Shown in pieces: positions 17,593 through 45,559 of a stretch of DNA of 64,000 nucleotides. A model generated the notes under the pieces. It was given only the letters and a program-made list of their open reading frames with translations. It was not told where the DNA came from and made no database searches. The translations under genes were made by a program, and so were the position numbers. The stretch is taken from positions 12,696,744 through 12,760,743 of the forward strand of contig NC_052170.1 of NCBI RefSeq assembly GCF_902713615.1. The letters run 5' to 3'. Position 1 is the first letter of the stretch; each line of letters opens with the position of its first letter. Source of the stretch: Scyliorhinus canicula (taxonomy: Eukaryota).

Positions 17593-18229
17593 AGGAAGAC
17601 GTGAGAGCTCAGGGCTTGGTGCTTCTCACTAATTACATCTCAAAGGCTAGTCAAAACAGGATCTTATGGTTATAATTGAATCATACTCCATTGCACAAGG
17701 GAACAAGAACTGGAAAACAAATAATTGCACCATCGCTGGGGTTCCTCTTCCCGCTGAGGTGCATCACAGTTGCTTTGCAGAAGGAAGGAGAGCAGCATGA
17801 ATAGTCTAGCCCGCTCCCTGTTGTTTTGGCACATGTCCGTCACCAGCCTTTATTCTACAGGTACGAGTTTGACATTCTGACTTTCATTTGTCTCTTTAAC
17901 TCTACATCAACGACTCAGTTGAGTTTGGGAATGGGAAAGCACGGCTTTTGGATTTACGCCCGGGATTGAGTGGATGTTGACGTGTTCTTAAATGAATTGT
18001 GTCTAGTTGGAGGAGTGATCGTTTTATTGTGTTTTGCGGAGTGGGATACTCTGGGAATAAGACCTGAAGGTGGTGGGTTTATTCAGCTGTCACACTAGGT
18101 TCCATTTAGTCTCTCAGGTTTGATTGCACCTGTTTTAAATGGTATTCTCTTCGTTTCACTTCAGTACTTTATATTTCTATGTATTGACATAATTTGTGCG
18201 AAAGCTGACAAGACGTCGTACTGCAGTGT

Positions 18230-18783: not shown

Positions 18784-18985
18784 CGCTGAGGTCCCAGGTT
18801 CGATCCTGGCTCTGGGTCACTGTCCGTGTGGAGTTTGCACATTCTCCCTGTGTCTGCGTGGGTTTCGCCCCCACAACCCAAAGATGTGCAGGGTAGGTGG
18901 ATTGGCCACGCTAAATTGCCCCTTAATTAGAAAAAATAATTGGGTAACCTAAATTTATTATTTTTTTTTTTTAATTTAAAAAAAA
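18784..18985 (+). mobile_element. 5'-truncated short A-tailed SINE with 15-bp TSD
   Basis: TSD GAAAATAAAATACAT (18769-18783 / 18986-19000). Confidence 0.9.
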
Positions 18986-19739: not shown

Positions 19740-19833
19740 ATGAATATATGTTGTCCTGAAGGTGCTGACTAAAGCCATCCCTTATCTTAGCAAATTGGCC
19801 AATGAAAGATTCTGGTGAAACGTCAGAGACCTG

Positions 19834-20501
19834 GGGTGAGATTCTCCGACCCCCCCCCCCCCCCCCCCTCCACCGGCCGGGTCGGAGAATCGCCGGGACC
19901 GGTGTGAATCCCGTCCCGCAGCCCCACCGCCGGCGGCCGAATTCTCTGGCGCCGGTTTTTTTGCGGGGTCGGGGATTGCGCCGCGCCAGTTGGGGGCCGT
20001 TGGCAGCGCCCCCCCCCCCCCCGGCAATACTCCACCCCGCGATGGGCCGAGCGGCCACCCGTTTTCGGCCAGTCCCGCCGGCGTGGATTAGACCAAGTCC
20101 TTACCGGCGGTACCTGGCTCTCCGGGCGGCCTGCGGAGTCCTCTGGGGAGGGCAGGGGGATCAGGCCCCGGGGAGGCCCCATGTTGGCCTGGCCCGCGAT
20201 CGGGGCCCACCGATCTGCGGGCCAGCCTGGGCTGTGGGGGCACTCCTTTCTTCTGCACCGGCCACTGTGAAGCTCCGCGATGGCCGTCGCGGAGAGGAAA
20301 CCCCCTGCGCATGCGCCAAATCGCACCGGCTGGCGGAGGCCCTTCGCCGCCGGTTGGCGTGGCGCCAACCCCTCCAGTGTGGCCTAGCCCCCGGAGGGGC
20401 AGAGGATTCCGCACCTTCCGGGCGGCCCCACGCCGGAGTCGTTGACGCCACTCCTTCGCGCCGATACAGCCCGCCCCGCTGGTTAGTGGAAAATCCCGCC
20501 C
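19834..20501 (+). mobile_element. GC-rich PIF/Harbinger-like MITE, copy 2
   Basis: Same TIRs (diverged), flanks CTG/TTG, collinear with copy 1. Confidence 0.75.
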
Positions 20502-20574
20502 TTGCTTCTCTCTCCACAGATGCTGTCAGACCTGCTGAGAATTTCCAGCATTTGCCATTGATGTTGTAGATTTA

Positions 20575-20935: not shown

Positions 20936-21328
20936 GGAAAATTGGTTGCAATGCTCAACTTACAAAGAAAGTTTCTGGTGTGCTGAAGGGAGATGTGACA
21001 ATCACCTGTAAGTATGCAGAGTCCATCCAGGCAACGACATTGCCACCCAAAGCGACCAGAGAAATCTCCATTGTGAGGTTGGCTGAGCAACATAATCTGC
21101 AATGGTTACATTATAAACATGACCATAAAGATGCCCAGGTCATAATCGACACCAGTATCGTACACCGATGTCCTACCCCTTCACGTTATTCAAATTCGAT
21201 GGGCTCCCTTCACACTGCCCAACTCCACATCAGAGGATTACTCGTGTCAGATGCTGGATTCTATTTCTGCGTCACAGTTAACAGCAAGCTTCAAAGAGAG
21301 CCTGATGCATCGCAGCTGGTTATCAAAG
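20936..21328 (+). CDS. IgSF receptor exon: V-set Ig domain
   Basis: Acceptor tttatattccag at 20935, donor AAAG|GTGAGT at 21329; 393 nt, phase 1-1, open frame. Motifs VTITC (B strand), LQW (C strand), AQLHIRGLLVSDAGFYFC (E/F strands, DxGxYxC). Confidence 0.88.
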
Positions 21329-28207: not shown

Positions 28208-28507
28208 CTGTCTCAATTTCTGAGACTTGGTTCCTAACATCCCCGATGGAGGCGAACAAGCCGACGATTCTGCTCTTGAATGTGATCGGATTTTATCCAA
28301 ATAAGATTGAGGTGGATTGGCAGCTGGCTAAGAAACAGCTGCAAGGCAACCCTGTGTTATTGGCTAACCCTCATTGTGATGGAACCTTCAACGCTACGTC
28401 TATGATTGCATTTGTACCACAAGCAGACGATCACGATAAAACAGTTACTTGCCACATCACTCATGAATCTGCAAAGGTATCGATGACTCTAAGGCTCCAG
28501 GTTTTAT
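28208..28507 (+). CDS. IgSF receptor exon: C1-set Ig domain (B-strand Cys replaced by Leu)
   Basis: Acceptor ttctcttctgttgtttaag, donor T|GTAAGT at 28508; 300 nt, phase 1-1. Motifs GFYP, VDW, DGTF, VTCHITH are C1-set hallmarks. Confidence 0.87.
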
Positions 28508-28689: not shown

Positions 28690-29870
28690 TTTTTTAAAAA
28701 ACTATTTTATTGAGTCATTTATATGTATACACATCAAACACAACCATAAAACAAGACAAACAGGGCTGCAAATAATCAAAACCACTAAAATACCTAACAC
28801 CCCACTATCCTGTCTCCCACACTGCAGCTCCTCTACCTCATTTTTAATCCCCCTACCCACTGCGGACATCTTAAAAGTTTTCAAAGAAGTCGATGAGCGG
28901 CCGCCATCTCCGGTCAAACCCCTTCACAGACCCTCTCAAGGCAAACTTTATCTTTTCCAGCCTGAGGAACTCTGCCCGGTCGCTCACCCAAACTCCTGGT
29001 TTTGGAGGCCCCGAGTCCCGCCATTCCAATAAGATCCGTCTCCGGGCTACCGGGGAGGCAAAGGCCAAGACCACCGGCCTCCCTCGACCCCTGGACTCCC
29101 GGGTCTTCTGACGCTCCAAAGATCGCCATTTCGGGACTCGGGACCACCTTCACCTTCAAGACCTCCGACATAACGTCGGCAAAGCCCTGCCAGAATGCCC
29201 CAACCTTTGGACACGCCCAAAACATATGGACATGATTCGCGGGCCCACCAGAGCACCGACGACACCTATCCTCCACCCCTTCAAAAAACCTGCTCACCCG
29301 GCCCACAGTCACGTGCACCGCCTTTAACTGAATACGGCTGAGCCTAGCACACAATGAGGATGCCTTCACCCTCGTCAAAACCTCTTCCAATGGGCAGCAC
29401 GGTGGCGCAGTGGTTAGCACTGCTGCCTCACGGCGCCGAGGTCCCAGGTTCGATCCCGGCTCTGGGTCACTGTCCGTGTGGAGTTTGCACATTCTCCCCG
29501 TGTCTGCGTGGGTTTCACCCCCACAACCCAAAGTTGTGCAGGCTAGGTGGATTGGCCACGCTAAATTGCCCCTTCATTGGAAAAATTAATTGGGTGCTCT
29601 AAAAAATTTTTTAAAAACCTCCTCCCACAGCCCAGCCTCCACCTCCCTCCCCAACTCTTCCTCCCACGTACGCCTCACTACCTCTATCGGGGCTCCCTCC
29701 CAGTCCATCAATTCCTTATATATTTCCGACATTTTACCCTCAGCTTCTCCGGTTATTGACACCATCTTGTCCTGTAGCCTCTGGGGTGGCAGGTGGGGCA
29801 AGGACGGCACCTGCTTACTTACAAAATCCCTCACCTGTAAATACCGGAACCCATTCCCAGCGGGCAACTC
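28690..29870 (-). mobile_element. L1-clade LINE 3' fragment (SINE inserted at 29392)
   Basis: FRYLQVRDFV, CSGGPANHVHMFWACPK, LEKIKFALRGSV..F.RRWRP. Confidence 0.82.
29392..29612 (+). mobile_element. Short A-tailed SINE inside an L1 fragment
   Basis: Imperfect TSD AAAACCTC(T/C)TCC. Confidence 0.88.
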
Positions 29871-31236: not shown

Positions 31237-31512
31237 ACGCTCCTCTACCTCTCACGGTGCAACCGCAGGAGGACTTTGCGAAGATGGAAGGTGACCTGCT
31301 CGAGCTGCGATGTATATCCAAAAGCAACCCTGTTGCTAAAATGTCTTGGATCCTCAATGGAAAAGTTTTGCTGGCCAAGACAACAACTCATTTGAGGATC
31401 AGAGTGGTGAACGTTTCACTCAGTGACCAAGGGAATTACAGCTGTTCTGCGGAGAACAGTCTGGGAACAAGAACTTCATCGGTGGCGGTCAACGTGATTG
31501 GCCTGCAACCCG
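31237..31512 (+). CDS. IgSF receptor exon: C2/I-set Ig domain
   Basis: Acceptor ctgtttcctgacag; splicing to the C1 exon creates the linker VL-Y-AP. Motifs LRC, SNP, SW, DQGNYSCSAENSLG. Phase-1 donor taken as G|GTTTGT at 31513, so the 3' end is less certain. Confidence 0.82.
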
Positions 31513-35369: not shown

Positions 35370-35461
35370 GTGCGACTGATGAACAAACGTGGCTCGCCGC
35401 TGGTATCAGCATCGGTGTGGTGCTCCTCCTAATCATTGTGACATCCGTTGCCGCGTACGCT
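35370..35461 (+). CDS. IgSF receptor exon: transmembrane segment
   Basis: Acceptor cctgtttgtgctgcag, donor GCT|GTAAGT; phase 1-0; encodes (G)ATDEQTWLAAGISIGVVLLLIIVTSVAAYA, hydrophobic with no charged residue in the helix. Confidence 0.82.
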
Positions 35462-36519
35462 GTAAGTACCTTTCTGACCACCATCAGCCCCCGCCCGGTG
35501 TGTGGCGTCAACTTGCTTCTGAAGTGACTTCACCTTTCTCGGCAAGTCCCACAAGCAGCGGACGGCAACAATATTCGGGCAGGCGCTGCGGAGAAAACGG
35601 TAAAAATGGGGGAGGGGGGGGAAGAATACTGGTCTGAACTGGTCTTGTATACCTCACAAGATGGAACACCAGTAAAGAGCAGGAGGTTAGAATACTGGTC
35701 TGAACTGGCCGCATGCACCTCAAAGTGGAACACTGGTCTTAGAATGCGAGTCTCAACTGGTTCCGTATTCCTTAAAAAGGAACGTCAGTAAAAACTGGGT
35801 CATAAGAATATTGGGTTTGAACTGTTTCCGACTGGGCCTTAAGCAGGTCAGGCAGCAGCTGCGCAGGAACAGAATCAGGCGCTTGACGCTTAAGGCCCTC
35901 AGACTATTGTCCCGCGGCCTGAAACCTTGGCCGGCTGACATCTTGTTGCTCTGCAGGCCTGACTCCTGAGCATCTGTTTACAATGAGGTCGGCCAGATCT
36001 GTCAATCGCGGTTGACCCTATTTCATTTTTTTTCAGTTCGTAAGAAAGCGTAGACTGGCAGGGCGGCAGGCGGAAGAACCAGTATACGTGGTGAGTGTGA
36101 ATGAGGGAACGCAAAGCTCATCTGGGACCTCCAGACATGACTTGCAATCAGAGACATTCTGTTAATCGCCCCTTTGACTGTCCGTGCTGTAATCCTGGGA
36201 CCAACATGGCGATGACCCGCTCCAAGTGAAAGACTTCACTGAGTCCTTGTTGGTTTGTTTTCCAGACCCTGTCCTTCTCCCCGGATTCAGCCAATCCGTT
36301 TGCAACCTTGGTGTCGCGTTCAACCCCATGATGGACGCCTAGCCTCATCGCCTGCTCGGCTGCTGCCTCTGTTGGGCTCGATTATTCCAACCCACTCTTG
36401 GCTGGTCTCCCACATTCTAACCTCTGTAAACTGGAGATCACCCAAACCTCTGCTGCCGGTGTCTTACCACGCTGCAAATCCCGTTCCCCTGTCACCCCTG
36501 AGCTCGCAGAACCATGGGG

Positions 36520-38404: not shown

Positions 38405-38590
38405 CACTCACTGGCCCAGGTTGCACACTCACTGGCCCAAGTTGCACACTCACTGGCCCAGCTCGCACACTCACTGGCCCAGGTTGCACACTCACTGGCC
38501 CAGGTTGCACACTCACTGGCCCAAGTTGCACACTCACTGGCCCAGCTTGCACACTCACTGGCCCAGGTTGCACACTCACTTGCCCAGTTG
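38405..38590 (+). repeat. 21-bp tandem repeat (~9 units, CACTCACTGGCCCAGGTTGCA)
   Basis: Directly visible. Variant order G,A,C,G,G,A,C,G suggests an 84-bp higher-order duplication. Intronic. Confidence 0.95.
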
Positions 38591-39074: not shown

Positions 39075-39149
39075 GCGCCGTCACAACCAACTGCTGACGT
39101 CTACGAGACTCTGAATGTGGCTGATTCCCAGAAGCCCAGCACCCAAAAG
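39075..39149 (+). CDS. IgSF receptor cytoplasmic exon with YETL motif
   Basis: Acceptor tctttcttcctttaag, donor AAG|GTAACT; 75 nt, phase 0-0; APSQPTADVYETLNVADSQKPSTQK. Confidence 0.72.
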
Positions 39150-40552: not shown

Positions 40553-40600
40553 GTGCATGATGCCATTTATGCAAACACTGAGCAAATCGGGAAGCTTTAA
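40553..40600 (+). CDS. IgSF receptor terminal coding exon with YAN motif
   Basis: Strong acceptor ctgctttttattttgttttaag; phase 0; VHDAIYANTEQIGKL then TAA. Confidence 0.72.
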   Translation: MHDAIYANTEQIGKL

Positions 40601-40606
40601 TGTAGT

Positions 40607-42055
40607 GCCACGGGAGGCATTACCAAGGTAAGCCAAGAGGAGGCATTACCAAGGTAAGCCAAGGGGAGGCATTACCAAGGTAAGTCATGGGGAGGCATTA
40701 CCAAGGTAAGCCAAGGGGTGGCATTACCAAGGTAAGCCAAGGGGAGGCATTACCAAGGTAAGCCAAGGGGTGGCATTACCAAGGTAAGCCACGGGAGGCA
40801 TTACCAAGGTAAGCCAAGGGGAGGCATTACCAAGGTAAGCCAAGGGGAGGCATTACCAAGGTAAGCCAAGAGAGGCATTACCAAGGTAAGCCATGGGGAG
40901 GCATTACCAAGGTAAGCCATGGGGAGGTATTACCAAGGTAAGCCATGGGGAGGCATTACCAAGGTAAGCCATGGGGAGGCATTACCAAGGTAAGCCAAGG
41001 GGAGGCATTACCAAGGTAAGCCATGGGGAGGCATTACCAAGGTAAGCCATGGGGAGGTATTACCAAGGTAAGCCATGGGGAGGCATTACCAAGGTAAGCC
41101 AAGGGGAGGCATTACCAAGGTAAGCCAAGGGGAGGCATTACCAAGGTAAGCCATGGGAGGCATTACCAAGGTAAGCCAAGGGGAGGCATTACCAAGGTAA
41201 GCCATGGGAGGCATTACCAAGGTAAGCCAAGGGGAGGCATTACCAAGGTAAGCCAAGGGGTGGCATTACCAAGGTAAGCCACGGGAGGCATTACCAAGGT
41301 AAGCCAAGGGGAGGCATTACCAAGGTAAGCCAAGGGGAGGTATTACCAAGGTAAGCCAAGAGAGGCATTACCAAGGTAAGCCATGGGGAGGCATTACCAA
41401 GGTAAGCCATGGGGAGGTATTACGAAGGTAAGCCAAGGGGAGGCATTACCAAGGTAAGCCATGGGGAGGCATTACCAAGGTAAGCCATGGGGAGGTATTA
41501 CCAAGGTAAGCCAAGGGGAGGTATTACCAAGGTAAGCCAAGAGAGGCATTACCAAGGTAAGCCATGGGGAGGTATTACCAAGGTAAGCCAAGGGGAGGCA
41601 TTACCAAGGTAAGCCAAGGGGAGGCATTACCAAGGTAAGCCACGGGAGGCATTACCAAGGTAAGCCATGGGAGGCATTACCAAGGTAAGCCAAGGGGAGG
41701 CATTACCAAGGTAAGCCAAGGGGAGGCATTACCAAGGTAAGCCAAGGGGAGGCATTACCAAGGTAAGCCATGGGAGGCATTACCAAGGTAAGCCAAGGGG
41801 AGGCATTACCAAGGTAAGCCATGGGAGGCATTACCAAGGTAAGCCAAGGGAGGCATTACCAAGGTAAGCCATGGGAGGAATTACCAAGGTAAGCCAAGGG
41901 GTGGCATTACCAAGGTAAGCCAAGGGGAGGCATTACCAAGGTAAGCCATGGGAGGCATTACCAAGGTAAGCCAAGAGGAGGCATTACCAAGGTAAGCCAA
42001 GGGGAGGCATTACCAAGGTAAGCCAAGGGGAGGCATTACCAAGGTAAGCCAAGGG
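40607..42055 (+). repeat. 26-bp minisatellite array (~55 units, GGCATTACCAAGGTAAGCCAAGGGGA and variants)
   Basis: Directly visible tandem array; invariant core with quasi-palindrome TTACC-AA-GGTAA; variable part AAGGGG/ATGGGG/ATGGG/ACGGG/AAGAG. Unit count estimated from length. Confidence 0.97.
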
Positions 42056-42169
42056 AAGATGCACAGCAGGAGATAAAAGCAACATGTTGTTGAAGAACCA
42101 CCTCTCGACCTTGAAGTCTTTAATATGAGCAGCCAGTTGCTTAATTAAAAAAACAGACAGACCTTCCCG

Positions 42170-42740
42170 CTGTGGAATAGAGATGTAGCATAGAGTTTTA
42201 CAGCACAGACAGAGGCCCTTCAGCCCATCGTGTTTGCGCCGGCCATCAAGCACCTATCCCATTTTCCAGCACTCAGTCCGTAGCCATGTACGCGCTGGTG
42301 TTTCAATTGCTCATCTGAATGCTTCTTAAACGCTGTGAGGTTTCCCACCTCTTCCACCCTTTCAGGCAGCGAGTTCCAGATTCCCATCACCCTCTGGATG
42401 GAAAGGCTTTTCCTCAAATCCCCTCGAAATCTCCTGCCCCCTTACCTCAGATCGATACCCCTTGGTTATTCACCTCCCCCCCCCTACTAATGGGGGTGGG
42501 GTGGGGGAGGCATAGATTTTAAGTGACTGGCAGAAGAATGTTAGGTGGGTTGAGGAGATTTATTTTTCACCTGTGGGAGGAAAGGGTAGTAGGGGCAGAA
42601 ATCTTCATCACATGTAAAAAAATACTTGGATGTGCCTAACTTGCAAGGTTATGGACCAAATGTTTAATAGTGGAGTTGGCTGTATAGCTCTTTTTTTGAC
42701 AAGCAGAATGGGCTGAATGGCCTCCTTCAGTGCAGTAAAT
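42170..42740. mobile_element. Two degenerate CR1 3' ends in opposite orientation
   Basis: QRVMGIWNSLPERV on -, a complementary remnant on +. Confidence 0.65.
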
Positions 42741-43404
42741 GTTTTTCAGTATGAGGGATGGGGAAAACGTGACAAGGTACATTATCACCACTCTGAACTG
42801 GTGCCGAATATAGACACTGCTTTTTTTTCTTCCAATCCTCTCATACTATTCCAGTGTTCCACTCCCTCATAAACGGATGTCAATGACTCAAGTCGCAAGC
42901 TTCTCTCTCCTCACGCTCTGAGGTAAATTTCGCCCAACATGAGGAATTTATCTGGTCTTATAGATAAGGGGGTGAGGCTGTTCAGCTCTGTCAAAAAAAA
43001 ACAATCCTCCCGAATATTGGACCTGCCGATAATGGTCAGAAGTTATGACAATGCCTCCCTGCCAAGTCGGATTTTACCGCTTTTGTGAGGGCCACGAAGG
43101 ATCCTGTATGATGGATAGCTGGGAAAAGGCTAATAAAAACATAGAAAATAGGAGCAGGAGGAAGCCATTCGGCCTTCAAGCCTGCTCCGCCATCCACTAT
43201 GATCATGGCTGACTCGTGGCGCCGAGGAGCCGGGTCACTGTCCCTGTGGAGTTTGCACATTCTCCCCCCGTGTCTGTGTGGGTCTCACCCCCACAACCCA
43301 AAGATGTGTAGGGTAGGTGGATTGGCCACGCTAAATTGCCCCTTAATTAAAAAAAAGATCATGGCTGATCATCCAGCTCAATAGCCTAATCCTGCTTTCC
43401 CCCC

Positions 43405-44812
43405 ATATCATAGAACATAGAATAATCCAGCACAGTACAGGCCCTTCGACCCACAATGTTGTGCCGATCATTTATCCTCATCTAAGATCAACCTAACCTA
43501 CACCCCTTCAATTTACTGTTGTCCATGTGCCTGTCCAAGAGTCGCTTAAATGTCCCTAATGAATCTGACTCCACCACCTCTGCTGGCAACGCATTCCACA
43601 CACCCACCACTCTCTGTGTAAAGAACCTACCTCTGACATCTCCCCTATACCGTGCTCCAATCACCTTAAAATTACGTCTCCTCGTGACAGCCATTTCCGC
43701 CCTGGGGAAAAGTCTCTGGCTATCCACTCTATCCATGCCTCTCATCACCTTGTACACCTCTATCAAGTCACCTCTCTGCCTTCTTAGCTCTAGTGAGAAA
43801 AGCCCTAGCTCCCTCAACCTTTCTTCATAAGACATGCCCTCCAGTCCAGGCAGCATCCTGGTAAATCTCCTCTGCACCCTCTCCAAAGCATCCACATCCT
43901 TCCTATAATGAGGCGACCAGAACTGGATACAATATTCCAAGTGTGGTCTAACTAAAGTTTTATAAAGCTGCAGCAAAACCTCACGGCTCTTAAACTCAAT
44001 CCCCCCGTTAATGAAAGCCAACACACCATACGCTTTCTTAACAACCCTATCAACCTGAGTGGCAACTTTGAGGGATCTATGTATGTGGACCCCACGATCC
44101 CTCTATTCCTCAACACTTCCAAGAATCCTGCCTTTAACCCTGTATTCAGCATTCAAATTTGACCTTCCAAAATGAATCACTTCACATTTATCAAGGTTGA
44201 ACTCCATCTGCCACTTCTCAGCCCAGCTCTGCATCCTGTCAATGTCCTATTGTAACCTGCAGCAGCCCTCGATACTATCTAATAACAATAATAATCTTTT
44301 ATTGTCACAAGTATGAAGTTACTGTGAAAAGCCCCTAGCCACCACATTCTGGTGCCTGCTCGGGTAAGCTGGTACGGGAATTGAACCCGCGCTGCTGGCC
44401 TCGTTCTGCATTACAAACCAGCTGTCTAGCCCACTGAGCTAAACTAGCCCTCCTGAGCTAAACGCGCCCTCTACAACTCCACCAACCTTTGTGACATTGG
44501 CAAACTTACTAACCCACCCTTCCACTTCCTCATCCAAGTCATTTCTAAAAATCACAAAGAGCAGAGGTCCCAGAACAAATTCCTGCGGGACACCACCGGT
44601 TACCGACCTCCAGGCGGAATACTTTCCATCCACTACCACTAGCTGTCTTCTTTCGGCCAGCCAATTCTGTATCCAGACAGCCAGATTTCCCTGTATCCCA
44701 TCCCCCTTAACTTCCTGAATGAGCCTATCATGGGGAACCTTATCAAATGCCTTACTGAAATCCATATACACCACATCCACTGCCCGACCTTCATCAATGT
44801 GTCTCATCACAT
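43405..44812 (-). mobile_element. Longest CR1 fragment (RT to 3' tail), SINE inserted ~44281-44450
   Basis: ORFs 44439-44810 and 43488-44024 carry DFSKAFDKVPH, GVPQ..VLGP, LYKTLVRPHLEYCIQFWSP. Confidence 0.93.
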
Positions 44813-44877
44813 TCTCAAGGAATCCTTGATCCCCTTCGCCCTAAGTGCTGTATCTAACTGCTTCTTAAAAACATGCG

Positions 44878-45559
44878 GGTCGGGATTCTCCCCTACCTGG
44901 CGGGGCGGGGCGTACCGGTACCGAGGAGTGGCGTCAACCACTCCGGCGTCGGGCAGCCCGGAAGGTGTGGAATCCTCCGCACCTTCAGGGGCTAGGCTGG
45001 CACCAGCGGGGTTGGCGCCGCCCAACCAGCGCGGAAGGGCTTGGCGCGGCGCCGAACGGCCTCCGCCGGCCGGCGCGAGTTGGTGCATGCGCGGGAGCAC
45101 CAGCGTGTGCTGGGGTCATGCCAGCGCTCACGCATTGGGGTTCTTCTCTGCAGCGGCCATGACGGAGGTTGACAGCAGCCAATGCGGAGGGAAAGAGTGC
45201 CCCCACGGCACAGGCCCGCCCGCGGATCGGTGGGCCCCGATCGCGGGCCAGGCCACCGTGGGGGCACCCCCCGGGGACAGATCCCCCCTCCTCTCCCCCA
45301 AGGACTCTGCAGGCTGCCCATAGAGCCAGGTCCCGCTGGTAAGGACCTGGCTTGATTTACGCCGGCAGGACCAGCCGAAAACGGGCGGCCGCTCGGCCCA
45401 TCACGAGCCGGAGAATCGCCGGAGAGGCGTGCTTCCTGCCCCCGCCAAAACCCCGGCGCCGGAGAATTCGACAGCCGGCGTCGGGGCGGGATTCACGCCA
45501 CCCCCCCCGACGATTCTCCGACTCAGCCCGGGGGGGGGGGGGGTTGGAGAATCCCGCCC
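44878..45559 (-). mobile_element. GC-rich PIF/Harbinger-like MITE, copy 3 (inverted)
   Basis: Same TIRs, internal sequence is the reverse complement of copies 1 and 2; flanks GCG/ACG. Confidence 0.75.

Follow-up and report, generated by a model that had tools for sequence, protein, structure and literature searches.

Variable number tandem repeats (VNTRs) located in the 3' untranslated region (3'UTR) have been associated with expression, as in the case of the 40-bp repeat of SLC6A3/DAT1. The present analysis concerns a 26-bp tandem repeat located directly behind the stop codon of an immunoglobulin-superfamily receptor gene of the catshark Scyliorhinus canicula (NCBI RefSeq assembly GCF_902713615.1, contig NC_052170.1, positions 12,696,744–12,760,743 of the forward strand). 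Each unit of this array contains a 5' splice-site (5'SS) motif, AAG/GTAAG, hereafter called a donor. The whole stretch of 64,000 nucleotides was analyzed and is referred to as the window; all positions are counted from its first letter, and all features are on the forward strand unless stated otherwise. VNTRs of the SLC6A3/DAT1 type are likewise 3'UTR minisatellites in which the copy number could affect mRNA output; however, their units are not splice-donor motifs.

Donor motifs in tandem have been described in the 37-bp VNTR in intron 7 of human F7 (Borensztajn et al. 2006, PMC1557585), where tandem sense units each carry an identical 5' splice site of functional grade. The catshark array showed the same property, with identical sense copies in 56/56 units. 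In F7, the repeated sites are tolerated through the choice of the most upstream one (PMC1557585). A proven coding exon-intron boundary falls within the first F7 unit and the remaining units are intronic, with several pseudo-sites, whereas the catshark array has 56 units, all behind the stop codon, with a poly(A) signal behind them.

A second related system is the V5-His retention element. A single copy of this element in the 3'UTR of a human reporter caused nuclear retention and decay, which were reversed by a GU-to-CA change (Lee et al. 2015, PMC4380460), and the effect was tied to U1-70K and ZFC3H1 (Lee et al. 2022, PMC9074902). The DelD stem, with its compensatory mutants, abolished the retention (PMC4380460). 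The 10-mer AAGGTAAGCC of the catshark array is identical to part of this element, ...CGAAGGTAAGCCT... (primers, PMC4380460). The V5-His element occurs after a stop codon in a terminal exon and is masked by a local stem-loop; the array occurs after a stop codon in what is most likely a terminal exon, with masking by stem-loops predicted. They differ in number and setting, V5-His having been placed once in human reporter plasmids, whereas in the catshark the motif occurs naturally 56 times, on each occasion with a complementary half built in. The 5'SS motif is depleted in human mRNAs up to 200 nt after stop codons and up to 200 nt before cleavage sites (PMC4380460). Both of these zones are filled by the catshark array, which presents the retention consensus MAGGURAG 56 times and would carry it into the mature mRNA.

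A third system is the papillomavirus late 3'UTR and U1 interference in general (PMC2367729; review PMC3826338), in which donor-like sites of the last exon lie upstream of a poly(A) signal. The geometry of the catshark array is similar, as the last donor lies 100 nt before an ATTAAA hexamer, the putative poly(A) signal, with no earlier hexamer. In that system, polyadenylation was not inhibited by U1 sites of 6 or 7 nt, to which purified U1 small nuclear ribonucleoprotein (snRNP) did not detectably bind; inhibition was approximately 6-fold with one class of 8-nt sites and approximately 13-fold with 10-nt sites (Abad et al. 2008, PMC2367729). Activity was lost whenever target positions 9 and 10 were both mutated, a stem over 5 of the 10 nt sufficed to abolish it, and multiple U1 sites acted synergistically, up to 1000-fold (PMC2367729). 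Activity thus takes 8 or more contiguous base pairs at an accessible site, whereas 55/56 catshark sites give 7 and are predicted to be paired.

The literature search found no described 3'UTR VNTR built of 5' splice sites. The array is notable for its place directly behind a stop codon, its copy number and its built-in masking half, and is kin to 3'UTR VNTRs, splice-donor minisatellites and 5'SS-motif elements. At a probability of roughly 0.55, it is best explained as a young, hairpin-prone minisatellite that would have expanded in a short ancestral 3'UTR, with the donors arising as a by-product and being largely masked by the units themselves.

The position of the stop codon could be established from the annotated protein. 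A chain of eight exons translated exactly to XP_038640894.1 (433 aa), which NCBI names 'cell adhesion molecule 3-like [Scyliorhinus canicula]'. The last coding segment (exon 8, 40553–40600; acceptor ttttattttgttttaag/G) encodes VHDAIYANTEQIGKL and ends in TAA at 40598–40600, the annotated stop of XP_038640894.1. The exon at 40553, on whose use the first-pass annotation had made its proposal depend, is therefore the annotated last coding exon. The annotated gene range extends from the ATG to the stop (17797–40600) and is hence silent on the 3'UTR. The C-terminus of the catshark protein, ...AIYANTEQIGKL, corresponds to ...AIYANTLQN in the basking shark (Cetorhinus) and ...AIYENT in the X1 isoform of Mustelus asterias. 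Since the two other sharks share AIY(A/E)NT and terminate shortly behind it, the frame and the early stop after the tyrosine motif are common to two shark orders. A coding +1 frame of the last exon, open to the first donor (40553–40627; CMMPFMQTLSKSGSFNVVPREALP), was rejected; an open frame of 25 codons has a chance of approximately 30%, so that it is probably fortuitous. It was also ruled out by the phase-0 cytoplasmic exons and by the phase-0 early stop in the annotated protein and two orthologues.

The array occupies 40607–42055 and consists of 56 units of 26 bp (consensus GGGAGGCATTACCAAGGTAAGCCAAG). Tandem Repeats Finder reported 40612–42055 with a period of 26, 56.1 copies, 93% matches and a score of 2496. 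A start at 40607 is equally defensible, as GCCACGGGAGG (40607–40617) resembles the spacer between units. With head-to-tail units within the range of approximately 10–100 bp and high identity between units, the array is a minisatellite and a candidate VNTR. The unit is a quasi-palindrome, GGCATTACC-AA-GGTAAGCC, or in its longer form GGCAUUACC-AA-GGUAAGCC, and it bears AAG/GTAAG in the sense orientation in 56/56 units. The first donor, AAG/GTAAGC at 40625–40633 (GT at 40628), follows the stop by 27 nt, and the second, with its GT at 40654, by 53 nt. The sole AAG/GTAAGT unit is located at 40677–40685, and the last donor at 42041–42049 (GT at 42044). The first-pass annotation had described an array of donors beginning 6 nt after the stop, at distances of 27 and 53 nt, embedded in a TTACC-AA-GGTAA quasi-palindrome and with a single GTAAGT at 40680. 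Motif counts together with Tandem Repeats Finder bore out its coordinates and its count of approximately 55 donors (56 units), and the other details were found to be correct when read from the sequence.

The donor motifs were almost exclusive to the array. AAGGTAAG occurred 56 times in the array against once in the remaining 62.5 kb of the window, TTACCAAGGTAA 55 times against none, and CAAGGTAAGC 54 times against none. GGTAAGC was counted 55 times in the array, in addition to the single GGTAAGT (GT at 40680). When the 19-nt core GGCATTACCAAGGTAAGCC was searched with up to 3 mismatches, 56 matches were obtained; dinucleotide shuffles gave a mean of 0.03, and 0/100 reached 56. The array itself is far beyond chance. 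The 56 donors are nevertheless one founding motif amplified and not 56 separate events. MAGGTRAG was found 5 times on the same strand in the other 62.5 kb, corresponding to approximately 0.2% of random 26-nt units, and a few such 3'UTR arrays are to be expected by chance in a multi-gigabase, minisatellite-rich genome.

Two further properties of the unit were observed. Owing to the quasi-palindrome, the antisense strand of the array carries approximately 55 weaker donor-like sites, mostly TTG/GTAATG, which would be relevant only if the locus were transcribed antisense. Each unit also contains a purine-rich GGGGAGG run, positioned 10–16 nt downstream of one donor and approximately 12 nt upstream of the next. 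G-runs at such a distance are intronic enhancers of upstream donors.

Search of the region from the last exon through the array to 42071 revealed no AATAAA, no ATTAAA and none of 12 weaker variants. The first weak variant after the stop was GATAAA at 42072, and the first canonical hexamer was ATTAAA at 42144–42149, 89 nt beyond the array and followed by CA dinucleotides and GCTGTGG. Because the stretch from the stop to the array end is free of poly(A) signals, the primary transcript must, on this reading of its signals, run into the array. A transcript ending before the array, which the first-pass annotation had named as fatal to its idea, is thus not what the signals suggest. If ATTAAA is used, the 3' end of the mRNA would be expected near 42160–42170. 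BLAST against the window showed that the 3' flank (42056–42198), which holds this first poly(A) signal, is unique within the window, and that the sequence just past the presumed 3' end (42199–42474, no strand assigned) is interspersed repeat with acceptor-like sites, for example at 42366. The possibility that the ATTAAA at 42144 is merely the tail of a local short interspersed nuclear element (SINE) was rejected, since the alignment shares only a short A-rich tail. When the array is subtracted, the 3'UTR becomes a coherent stretch of approximately 140 nt ending at ATTAAA; this is the main reason why a short ancestral 3'UTR is favoured. From these signals, the mature mRNA would either keep the array, with a 3'UTR of approximately 1.56 kb, or have most of it spliced out.

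The folding of the array RNA was evaluated in silico. A single unit was predicted to form a hairpin of -7.6 kcal/mol that accounted for 96% of the ensemble, with GUAAGCC fully paired. The predicted folds of two and four units reached -18.5 kcal/mol (z -5.3) and -42.2 kcal/mol (z -6.8), respectively. In the predicted fold of the whole 1.6-kb 3' region, 52/55 GGUAAGCC donors paired with GG[C/U]AUUACC, and the mean unpaired probability of a donor base was 0.25. Opening a 7-nt U1 site was predicted to cost 5.2–6.5 kcal/mol (3.3–5.0 for the first donor), compared with -9.5 kcal/mol for the U1 duplex. Most donor sites are therefore predicted to be masked from U1 at equilibrium. In these models the sites lie inside stems, the reverse of the accessible state on which both U1 interference and nuclear retention depend. 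At the DNA level, two units were predicted to form a hairpin of -8.3 kcal/mol (z -4.0), and single-stranded DNA hairpins were predicted on both strands.

The edges of the array suggest how it may have begun. An imperfect direct repeat of 11 nt (GCCAnGGGAnG) could be read at both ends, with GCCACGGGAGG as the left copy (40607–40617) and GCCAAGGGAAG as the right copy at the 3' edge (42048–42058). In the inferred ancestral sequence, the two copies would be approximately 26 nt, or one unit, apart, and they probably seeded slippage. Closely spaced direct repeats are a classic slippage substrate, and the array has most likely grown by replication slippage. A total of 13 unit variants and a truncated last unit were present. 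When the units are written out as a string of variants, one multi-unit block recurs (DEBBFGHG vs DEBJFGKB), which points to larger duplications or unequal exchange as a further mode of growth.

All six variant types occurring in several units fell in the 9-nt spacer, and the 17-nt palindromic core showed two singleton changes only; this partition of spacer and core, chosen post hoc, gave P = 0.0017. When the donor 9-mer alone was set apart, the values were P = 0.08 for spread variants and P = 0.13 for all variant types, so that the distribution of unit variants gave no evidence of selection on the donors. Two mutational hot spots, a CpG and the G-run, fall within the spacer. In 14/55 units the only difference was one G in the G-run, and such variants could partly be homopolymer assembly errors. 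The exact two-unit pattern had 0 matches in metagenome contigs and prokaryote genome contigs, and an Rfam scan of the window returned no family.

Taken as a young minisatellite, the array would have arisen as follows. Slippage or unequal exchange between the imperfect 11-nt direct repeats would have amplified the stretch between them, probably helped by the hairpin that the quasi-palindrome of the unit may form in single-stranded DNA, and multi-unit duplications would later have enlarged the array. The founding unit would by chance have held AAG/GTAAGCC, from which 56 sense-strand donor motifs would have followed as a by-product. The array most likely stays in the terminal exon, which would end after the ATTAAA at 42144. 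In the RNA, each donor may find a partner in the U1-like CAUUACC half, either of the same unit or of an adjacent one, which would hide most sites from U1 snRNP. The net effect on the mRNA would then range from none to moderate repression, and some repressive side effect of the array is quite possible, with no evolved brake tuned by copy number.

Several points weigh against this explanation. The fold predictions describe RNA at equilibrium and take no account of helicases, proteins or the loading of U1 during transcription. Where the mRNA ends and what becomes of the donors are likewise deduced from signals in the DNA. The confinement of spread variants to the spacer could reflect constraint on the core. 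Finally, the interval between the acceptor at 40553 and the strong donor at 40628 would make an ideal 75-nt exon of internal type.

This last point belongs to the alternative that survives best, in which splicing really uses the first donor (GT at 40628) as the end of a 75-nt exon (40553–40627). The array would then be an exon end and its donor copied into a 3'UTR intron, similar to F7 intron 7; the first donor would be used and the remaining donors would be removed with the intron. When identical donors occur in a run, as in F7, splicing uses the one furthest upstream and no other (PMC1557585), and a 3'UTR intron would account for the tolerance of 56 strong donors. Downstream there are numerous acceptor-like sites with poly(A) hexamers behind them, for example the acceptor at 42366 and AATAAA at 43132. 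However, the candidate acceptors sit in repeats, and a crude score did not separate them from the background. In humans, 3'UTR introns are uncommon, being present in approximately 5% of genes (PMC4380460). The ATTAAA located 89 nt past the array, in window-unique sequence just before a transposable element, fits an ancestral 3' end, a placement of approximately 5% by chance. Since the rough priors of the two explanations are similar and this ATTAAA shifts the balance toward the young minisatellite, the 3'UTR intron is regarded as a serious but distinctly less probable alternative.

The first-pass annotation had also considered that junctions formed by the array donors could trigger nonsense-mediated decay (NMD). 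Against the distance of more than 50–55 nt that this requires, a junction at the first donor, 27 nt past the stop, would be too close and one at the second donor, at 53 nt, borderline. Donors 3–56 lie further downstream, where a junction, if formed, would be far enough from the stop.

The strength of the donors was evaluated using a rough 5' splice-site weight matrix together with U1 duplex energies. AAG/GTAAGC scored 7.1 of a maximum of 8.7, higher than 6/7 of the gene's own donors, and only 4/3487 GT positions elsewhere in the window reached this score. The array sites are thus strong for splicing. Pairing with U1 was shorter, as AAGGUAAGCC pairs with U1 at target positions 2–8 only, giving 7 bp in 55/56 units; the GUAAGU unit (40680) gives 8 contiguous bp. 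The length of at least 8 contiguous bp to the U1 5' end that is associated with U1 interference is consequently absent from 55/56 units.

These values bear on the proposal of the first-pass annotation that the array is a selected brake, tunable by copy number, in which U1 snRNP bound to terminal-exon donors blocks polyadenylation and/or causes nuclear retention and decay. Its material basis stood: the sense array lies behind a true stop, is by its signals transcribed, leaves 100 nt between its last donor and the first poly(A) signal, and repeats a splice-grade motif that includes AAGGTAAGCC, the published 10-mer of the V5-His element (PMC4380460, PMC9074902). The published synergy of multiple U1 sites, up to 1000-fold (PMC2367729), and a palindromic core without variants spread between units also agree with it. 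The brake itself fared less well. The 7-bp match in 55/56 sites is below the published inhibition threshold (PMC2367729), and the predicted folds enclose the donors in stems that cost 5–6.5 kcal/mol to open, a kind of stem that abolishes the effect (PMC2367729, PMC4380460). N6-methyladenosine (m6A) is reported to be needed for retention (PMC11629677), and no DRACH site, the m6A consensus, was present inside the array. The shortage of variants in the donor 9-mer was not significant, the array looks young, and NCBI predicts a complete protein-coding gene at the locus. An evolved brake tuned by copy number is considered unlikely: the U1 matches are 7 bp long, masking is predicted, and both DRACH sites and signs of selection are lacking.

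A variant of this idea would place the control in the structure itself, with 56 motifs of retention grade, each kept closed by its built-in U1-like complementary half, many of which could be opened at once to U1 by a helicase, an RNA-binding protein or the speed of transcription. If true, the mRNA would toggle between being exported and being either kept in the nucleus or suppressed at its poly(A) site, with the gain set by the number of units; we consider such a structure-gated device improbable. Still less probable is a role at the DNA level, in which TTACCAAGGTAA or CCAAGGTAA would form an array of binding sites or a recombination hotspot and the donor look would be incidental. The nearly invariant palindromic core agrees with such a role, and CCAAGGTAA resembles the extended half-site of nuclear receptors (YCAAGGYCA); however, the match to the half-site is imperfect, and the window holds no pointer to an enhancer. 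An assembly artefact, in which long-read errors produced the copy number or the G-run variants, is the least credible explanation, for although the one-G differences in 14/55 units are typical of homopolymer error, the 1.45-kb array is short compared with long reads, has unique flanks on both sides and shows structured unit variants, and such errors would alter its details and not its existence.

The gene model was assembled by hand from Ig-domain exons, a transmembrane exon and small phase-0 cytoplasmic exons. Upstream of exon 8, it comprises exon 1 (17797–17860), exon 2 (20936–21328), exon 3 (28208–28507), exon 4 (31237–31512), exon 5 (35370–35461), exon 6 (36037–36090) and exon 7 (39075–39149), the translations of which all match XP_038640894.1. 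This protein and its shark relatives were found by aligning the translations of the V, C1 and C2 exons placed behind a long non-coding open reading frame of the window; the frame at 19802–20569 served solely as a length scaffold in the protein search. The receptor is a shark-only V-C1-C2 gene of the immunoglobulin superfamily and of immune type. An exhaustive protein search with the C2 exon gave matches dominated by giant multi-Ig proteins, and no transcript-derived partial proteins of the receptor were found among the searchable protein collections when the C2 exon and the C-terminal 94 residues were used as queries.

Three tyrosine motifs of the cytoplasmic tail, EEPVY(V/M), DVYE(T/S)L and AIY(A/E)NT, are kept in catshark, basking shark and Mustelus; after AIYxNT, the residues and the exact stop position vary by species. 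AIY(A/E)NT is a YxN motif, of the kind that SH2 domains of the Grb2 type typically bind. The C-terminus of the Mustelus asterias isoform X2, ...EPVYMVKAKCHICSELSPV, resembles the product of reading on into the intron that follows the juxtamembrane exon (VK representing a GTAAAG-like donor), and tail-less receptor isoforms are therefore predicted in another shark.

Other repeats were observed in the neighbourhood. A second minisatellite is located at 38405–38587 (21 bp × 8.7 copies, CACTCACTGGCCCAGGTTGCA, 93% matches), in the intron of the same gene that precedes the exon at 39075. A SINE-like element of approximately 125 bp ending in CCCCTTAATTAAAAAAA occurs at 43232–43356 and in at least 14 other places (e.g., 18814–18936 and 29464–29585), scattering ATTAAA hexamers through the locus in both orientations. 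Two GC-rich open frames rich in proline and arginine, at 19802–20569 (255 aa) and 44730–45323 (197 aa), share motifs such as PADRWAPIAGQA and are probably one repeat family and not genes.

An mRNA of this receptor with 56 donor copies in the zones from which human mRNAs are depleted of them would mean one of three things: tolerance through self-masking, a gene held down by U1 surveillance, or an unannotated 3'UTR intron. Any of the three outcomes would be informative on U1-dependent quality control of repeated donors, and the catshark locus would serve as a natural series for copy number and structure.

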